A stretch of DNA of 35,105 bases. Source: Octopus bimaculoides. Lineage: Eukaryota. A program made the translations under genes and the position numbers. The notes beneath the pieces are model-generated. The model saw only the letters and a program-made list of their open reading frames with translations, had not been told where the DNA came from and made no database searches. Shown piece by piece: positions 21,716 through 21,888 of this stretch. The number at the start of each line of letters is the position of its first letter. Position 1 is the stretch's first letter. The stretch spans positions 48,361,728-48,396,832 of the forward strand of contig NC_068988.1 in assembly GCF_001194135.2 (NCBI RefSeq), given 5' to 3'.

Positions 21716-21726
21716 GCAATACATAC

Positions 21727-21760
<34 letters not shown>

Positions 21761-21810
21761 GGTCCCTGCGCAAGGATGACACGCACATTCGTGAAGCGTT
21801 CACTATTTTT
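21716..21810 (+). ncRNA. RNU6: U6 snRNA copy, probably a retropseudogene (5' end in assembly gap)
   Basis: ACTAAAATTGGAACGATACAGAGAAGATTAGCATGGtCCCTGCGCAAGGATGACACGCAcATTCGTGAAGCGTT..TATTTTT matches the highly conserved U6 sequence. The ACAGAGA box, AGC triad and T5 end are intact, with several substitutions elsewhere. Confidence 0.93.
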
Positions 21811-21888
21811 AAATGGCGGTGCACCAGCATGGCCACAGCTCGTGAGCTGAAGCTAGATAAACAAAAACAAATATAATAAAATAAAAAT
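21811..21888 (+). mobile_element. Retroposon (SINE/LINE) 3' tail with A-rich end fused to U6
   Basis: AAATGGCGGTGCACCAGCATGGCC matches the family B SINE tail near 20490-20512 (reverse complement AAATGCGGTGCTCCAGCATGGCC). It is followed by the hairpin CAGCTC-GT-GAGCTG and an A-rich tail. Confidence 0.75.

Follow-up and report, generated by a model that had tools for sequence, protein, structure and literature searches.

The window analysed here is a stretch of 35,105 nt of Octopus bimaculoides DNA, from a gap-rich short-read assembly that is dense in SINEs and microsatellites and interrupted by 11 N gaps. At 21716-21888 it holds a U6 snRNA sequence that emerges from the edge of one such gap and runs through its terminal T run directly into a short retroposon 3' tail (Table 1). 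An earlier reading, made from the sequence only, had assigned the DNA to a probable mollusc, and this is supported both by a LINE reverse-transcriptase C-terminal ORF at 34518-34871 (-), 82% identical to O. bimaculoides A0A0L8I0U5, and by the presence of the tail module in O. vulgaris transcripts. The left flank of the gap next to U6 is (TA)n, as at most of the window's gaps; 8 of the 11 are flanked by (TA)n or related microsatellites (e.g. 7715-7758, 12552-12663, 17918-18830, 21156-21715). The same microsatellites produce dozens of sub-threshold false Rfam matches to mir-297, mir-466 and mir-1277, and a permissive-threshold Rfam scan of the window returned only such microsatellite-driven miRNA matches and no more small-RNA pieces.

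Table 1. Positions in the window of the two U6 copies, the retroposon tail and the elements related to them.
Feature	Position	Strand	Details	Rfam entry
Assembly gap, 560 N	21156-21715		hides U6 5' end, upstream target-site duplication and any PSE/TATA promoter	
U6 snRNA-derived segment	21716-21810	+	U6 nt ~13-107, 3' end complete	RF00026
T5 run, U6 3' oligo-U end	21806-21810	+	also Pol III terminator; junction with tail	
Retroposon 3' tail	21811-21880	+	homologous to last ~70 nt of SINE B (tRNA-type) and to tails in SINE-bearing O. vulgaris transcripts	
Tail hairpin 1 (UGGC.GUGC-ACCA-GCAU.GCCA)	21814-21835	+	RNA fold	
Tail hairpin 2 (CAGCU-CGUG-AGCUG)	21836-21849	+	RNA fold; compensatory variants in related tails	
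A-rich 3' terminal stretch ATAAACAAAAACAAATATAATAAAATAAAAATA	21855-21888	+	insertion end around 21880-21888	
tRNA-type SINE, family B (SINE B), reference copy	20441-20885	-	tail at 20447-20517	
Second, older U6 copy	30577-30667	-	complete 5' end, 13-nt internal deletion	
SINE A fragment	30444-30572	-	reference positions 14-138; 4 nt after second U6, same orientation	

The U6 match scores 95.6 bits (E 1.1e-23; cmscan), above the Rfam gathering score of 44, and both the ACAGAGA and the AGC triad are intact, as in a functional U6 gene. It begins with the first base after the N gap, so that ~12 nt of the 5' stem-loop are missing. Compared with human U6, 88 of the 95 positions are identical. Of the seven mismatches, three are at the contig edge, within 11 nt of its start, where the visible GCAATACATACAC stands against GCAGCACATATAC in a part of U6 that bears on the 5' stem-loop and AUAUAC capping signal of a functional gene; two are internal (C->T in GGCCCC and A->C in GCAAAT) and two fall just before the T run. 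The sequence-only reading had taken these several substitutions to favour a retrocopy over a functional gene. The differences themselves are there, but with only two of them internal and two near the 3' end, the other three sitting at the contig edge, the argument drawn from them is weak. Both internal substitutions are found too in the U6 genes of unrelated eukaryotes, and the U6 sequence alone is therefore no proof of a pseudogene; with so few internal changes the segment could be a near-functional gene. The real evidence for a retrocopy is the exact junction rather than the substitutions.

At this junction the U6 copy ends in CACTATTTTT, including its T5, and AAATGGCGGTGCACCAGCATGGCC follows directly at 21811-21834, confirming by Rfam match and by inspection the earlier observation that the tail is joined to the terminal TTTTT of U6 with no spacer. 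The oligo-U end is complete, and homology to the tail starts at 21810/21811, at TAAATG, within 1 nt of the T run. The U6 part lies 5' of the retroelement part with both on the + strand, the tail aligning with the sense strand of SINE B, and a single copy of the U6-T5-tail junction is present in the window. In an assembly of short reads with 11 N gaps a junction of this kind might be an artefact, the assembler having brought together a U6 copy and a SINE tail from separate places in the genome, and the contig does start inside U6 with three mismatches in its first 11 nt. However, U6 and tail have at most a few bases in common where they meet (TTTAAAT), too few for a k-mer graph to join, and the junction is placed 95 nt within a contig that then runs on for ~900 nt of unique sequence. 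We regard an assembly error as very improbable.

The tail is homologous to the 3' end of SINE B. There are two sites in the window for the 17-mer GGTGCWCCAGCATGGCC, one at 21818-21834 (+) and the other at 20494-20510 (-), with 0.08 expected and two matches in none of 100 shuffles. The second of these sites sits in the 3' end of SINE B, where the sequence-only reading had placed a shared motif (near 20490-20512), and since this SINE runs on the minus strand (20885->20441) both sites are oriented alike relative to their elements. Local alignment and blastn of 21810-21880 with SINE B positions 369-439 give 75% identity over 73 nt (E 8.5e-5 in the window), including a core of 19/20, and the homology extends to the common terminal AATATAATAAA, i.e. 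over the last ~72 nt to the 3' terminus of the SINE. The same tail module is present behind other heads in the O. vulgaris transcripts comp2870 and comp3288 (supplement of Petrosino 2022, PMC9115989). Folded as RNA, 21806-21888 forms two adjacent hairpins and an unpaired A-rich end (-18.5 kcal/mol, z -2.96, with 2 of 200 shuffles as stable); the smaller feature noted earlier, the hairpin CAGCTCGTGAGCTG followed by an A-rich end, is present as described. In the six tails compared, the hairpin 2 stem is CAGCT/AGCTG (U6 tail), CAGTC/GACTG or CAGCC/GGCTG, both sides being changed in two of the five pairs, and its covariation score in this small sample of six is 0.205, compared with 0.131 +/- 0.031 in shuffles (7 of 500 reach 0.205) and well above every slid control. 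In the SINE B copy of the window hairpin 2 has decayed (z -0.7). The module can be written as GGTGCNCCAGCATGGCC followed by CAGNN-loop-NNCTG and an A-rich end, and a structured, covarying tail of this kind is what a 'stringent' LINE and its client SINEs would be expected to have for recognition at the 3' end.

The window contains no LINE that carries this tail, and the motif is absent from the two LINE remnants whose 3' regions lie within it. The 3' UTR of the LINE at 34518-34871 has a hairpin and an (AAT)n-like end, unlike the tail of SINE B and U6, and is followed ~50 nt downstream by a fragment of a SINE B head (34244-34349). A further region, 15870-16680 (-), contains two ORFs, of 97 and 100 aa, similar to the C-terminal part of a LINE reverse transcriptase (..RWCGHIARIADERMSKQLFYGQL..) and without a Pfam match, and its 3' end runs into a gap. 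As the tail has just 75% identity to the sole complete SINE B copy in the window, the donor of the U6 tail would be an element that is related to SINE B and lies outside the window's view.

U6 chimeric pseudogenes are recognised by just this layout, a U6 sequence with its full oligo-U end followed in the same orientation by a 5'-truncated retroelement piece that extends as far as the 3' terminus of the element. We consider that 21716-21888 is probably a U6/retroposon chimeric retrocopy derived from a single retrotransposition event, and the best reading of it is an incidental product of retrotransposition that arose once, of a kind already familiar from vertebrates, rather than a new mobile-element family. 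Everything visible at the locus agrees with the earlier proposal, in which ligation or template switching put a retroposon 3' tail on the oligo-U end of U6, and chimeras of this class are documented. In such an event the reverse transcriptase of a 'stringent' LINE would recognise the two-hairpin 3' tail of a client RNA, whether that of the partner LINE or of a SINE belonging to the local tail family, would prime at the nicked target and would copy the A-rich end and the ~70 nt tail. The enzyme may then have left the tail RNA and taken the 3' end of U6 snRNA as its new template, or else U6, with its five U and 2',3'-cyclic phosphate, may have been ligated beforehand by an RtcB-type ligase to a 5'-OH tail fragment. 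Either route would yield U6-T5-tail-(A-rich) in one orientation, and the five T agree with the one as with the other. U6 relies on an upstream PSE/TATA and lacks an internal promoter. The product would thus be inert, as the U6 part needs an external promoter and places its own T5 terminator ahead of the tail, and the locus amounts to a failed SINE birth, not a SINE. The remaining signature predicted for a single event, the U6 5' end and the flanking target-site duplication, falls in the gap at 21156-21715 and is hidden there.

U6/L1 chimeric pseudogenes of mammals are reportedly the subject of work by Buzdin in 2002/2003 and by Garcia-Perez in 2007. In these chimeras, as at the octopus locus, a complete U6 3' end of ~5 T leads without a spacer into the 3' end of a 5'-truncated retroelement, the resulting copy is transcriptionally inert and both the ligation and the template-switch models apply (Moldovan 2019, PMC6789731). 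Mature U6 ends in five U and a 2',3'-cyclic phosphate, and ligation of U6>p by RtcB to 5'-OH RNAs ahead of retrotransposition has been demonstrated (Moldovan 2019, PMC6789731). However, L1 is a relaxed, poly(A)-dependent element, whereas the tail found here is a structured two-hairpin tail of stringent LINE/SINE type with no pure poly(A). Doucet et al., who traced U6 chimera formation 'from birds to mammals' and ascribe it to template switching by reverse transcriptase, describe U6 chimeras with L1, stringent L2 and RTE LINEs and with the SINEs Mon-1 and AnolisSINE2, among them 40 platypus U6 copies that end in a short L2 or Mon-1 tail, and anole chimeras with L1, L2, RTE and AnolisSINE2 partners (Doucet 2015, PMC4476161). 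The U6/L2, U6/RTE and U6/SINE chimeras of platypus and anole share with the octopus locus the position of U6 upstream of a 3'-terminal LINE or SINE piece in the same orientation, the platypus piece being short too. They differ in coming from a vertebrate-only survey, whereas the host here is a cephalopod mollusc, and in ending in a TGAA-type repeat where the octopus tail has an irregular A-rich end. Unlike those documented chimeras, the octopus copy has its U6 5' end and any upstream target-site duplication in a gap, and no LINE with its tail lies in the window.

The window contains a second U6 copy, at 30577-30667 (52.1 bits, E 1.8e-10; cmscan, Rfam), and this too is followed by a SINE. Its neighbour belongs to SINE A, the window's other SINE family, which has a tRNA-like head; homology to SINE A starts 4 nt past the degenerate T run of the U6 copy and is lost after reference position 138, beside a Mos1-type mariner remnant (HTH_48 match at about 29.71-29.85 kb, + strand) which the block adjoins, so that the 3' half of SINE A is absent. 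Of this mariner only the HTH_48 domain is recognisable, too little to place break points for an insertion of U6 and SINE A as one unit. To judge by this arrangement, the second U6 copy and the SINE A fragment are probably another U6-SINE chimera. That partner and junction point differ between the two U6 copies speaks for a recurrent process that fuses U6 to whichever retroposon RNA is being copied, and against a single amplifying family. In the same window SINE A forms head-to-tail dimers at 19895-20278 (+), 3736-3976 (-) and 16860-17164 (+), their junction, with reference position 231 joined to 20, being identical at two loci and of similar spacing at the third; this would be either a dimeric SINE unit or the result of recurrent template jumps between SINE RNAs.

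Both U6 copies in the window therefore show a nearby same-strand boundary of SINE homology, which bears on whether the main locus could be the product of two independent events, an existing U6 gene or pseudogene and a later, chance insertion of a 5'-truncated SINE or LINE at the end of its T run. Stringent LINEs and SINEs often leave 5'-truncated copies, SINEs are dense in this genome, and the U6 part is nearly intact internally, leaving room for a real gene whose upstream region would lie within the gap. However, a SINE boundary 0-5 nt downstream on the same strand is expected by chance at only ~8e-4 per site, or ~7e-7 for both copies (a rough estimate from the window's SINE density), yet a boundary within a few nt, at ~1e-3 per site, is present at both. 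Nor does the tail alone have a target-site duplication of its own: the best match is 7 nt long and 30 nt away, and is matched by 15% of shuffles. A known process, moreover, yields exactly this junction, and we consider two separate events unlikely.

The chimeric retrocopy has also to be distinguished from a U6-headed SINE family, in which U6 and the 70-nt tail would form a multi-copy retrotransposition unit with a constant junction, amplified by the partner LINE. The tail would suit such a unit. It is a complete minimal module with both hairpins and an A-rich end, and alignment, fold and covariation all give 21811-21880 the LINE-type 3' end of a SINE; several different heads have captured the same tail in octopus, and two U6 copies in 33 kb hint at a high density of U6. 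The octopus tRNA-derived SINEs OK, OR1 and OR2 are said to have been described by Ohshima and Okada in 1994. These families, which appear under those RepeatMasker names in the supplement of PMC9115989, would supply or share the tail module behind U6, but they have tRNA-like heads with internal A and B boxes and are high-copy; SINE A and SINE B of the window may belong to them. Loci derived from snRNA and 5S are numerous in cephalopod genomes, the giant squid having ~1,300 U2 and ~24,000 5S loci (PMC6962438), and the crocodilian SINEU, in which, as here, an snRNA-derived 5' part precedes a LINE-type 3' tail, indicates that snRNA heads without internal promoters can amplify (Kojima 2015, PMC4494074). 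SINEU, however, has U1 or U2 heads and a high copy number with near-identical structure, whereas here the head is U6, one copy is observed and a Pol III terminator stands between head and tail. High copy number and a near-identical head-tail structure are the features by which Kojima recognises a SINE (Kojima 2018, PMC5786205).

Transcription is one obstacle to such a family. A SINE is expected to be transcribed as far as its tail, with an internal promoter and no terminator on the way, but here T5 at 21806-21810 splits the head from the tail, so a Pol III transcript would lose the tail, and the U6 promoter is external, of type 3. In addition, the second U6 copy has another partner and another junction, no further copy was found in the window, in metagenome contigs or among 5.8 billion proteins (the last two being weak evidence, as octopus DNA is scarce in them), and the literature searched reports neither a U6-headed SINE nor U6 chimeras in molluscs. 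The suggestion in the sequence-only reading of a U6-headed SINE family is thus unsupported, and we rate such a family as distinctly improbable. There is an equally slim chance that the locus is the founder or a member of a multi-copy octopod family with an identical junction, propagated by read-through of a weak T5 or from host promoters; if true, U6 would for the first time be known as the head of a SINE, and snRNA-headed SINEs would for the first time be known beyond the vertebrates.

The database searches behind the copy-number argument have a limited reach. A pattern for the junction gave no matches in metagenome contigs, though such DNA collections yielded no cephalopod DNA; a pattern for the tail gave two unrelated matches only, GC-rich or non-cephalopod, and the 17-mer GGTGCWCCAGCATGGCC gave 12 chance matches in viral contigs, none of them cephalopod. 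No stop codon interrupts sense frame 3 or one of the antisense frames over U6 and tail, and both were used as 'protein' queries: the junction-spanning ORFs of the two strands matched, among the 5.8 billion proteins, only plain U6 genes of assorted eukaryotes, none reaching the tail. Three of these matches (P0015-P0017) have both internal substitutions, but their contigs are of unrelated origin, from a gene-dense small eukaryote and marine metagenomes. Octopus DNA is nearly absent from the collections, even the high-copy LINE ORF having given only ~8 octopus-like matches, and the negative result therefore rules out at most a very abundant family. Through that ORF, too, little octopus DNA could be reached, the exact ORF not being on record and the contigs of homologues of at least 75% identity being ~1 kb or less. 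The O. vulgaris transcript supplement (400 kb) has no U6 sequence in it. The stop-free frames of U6, one sense and one antisense over 21716-21899, account for more than 100 spurious 'proteins' in public collections that are translated U6 genes (P0001-P0023, P0137-P0236), among them P0179, named as an N-acyl-L-homoserine lactone synthetase, and P0200, a 'secreted protein' of the spider Caerostris extrusa.

As a chimeric retrocopy, the locus is probably the first molluscan case to be described of U6 joined to a stringent-type tail. Should target-site duplications confirm it, U6 chimera formation would extend from vertebrates into a lophotrochozoan, and together with the probable second example 9 kb away the locus would support the view that LINE machineries in general, or else U6/RtcB biology, give rise to such fusions. 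The locus also puts the raw material of SINE birth on view, with one octopus tail module joined to several heads, in this case to a head unable to drive its own transcription. From U6 chimeras one could moreover tell which LINE of the octopus was active and at what time, a point of interest since LINE activity is being studied in the octopus brain (PMC9115989). The locus is one incomplete case in a draft assembly, a useful annotation and an illustration of SINE-tail capture rather than a discovery, and would be no surprise to a specialist.

Two minor features of the window lie apart from the U6 copies. Decayed ORFs at 7850-7997 (+) and 9699-10139 (-) have a motif in common, QVWIW..QEFNTKRFLPTT.QGSYP.MAW, and are without a Pfam match; they are likely remnants of one DNA-transposon/transposase family, as the motif suggests. 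A 16-bp minisatellite, GATTCTAATGGGCCTG, lies 640 nt downstream of the chimera at 22529-22640 (+), where it is repeated in ~7 copies of 98-100% identity.
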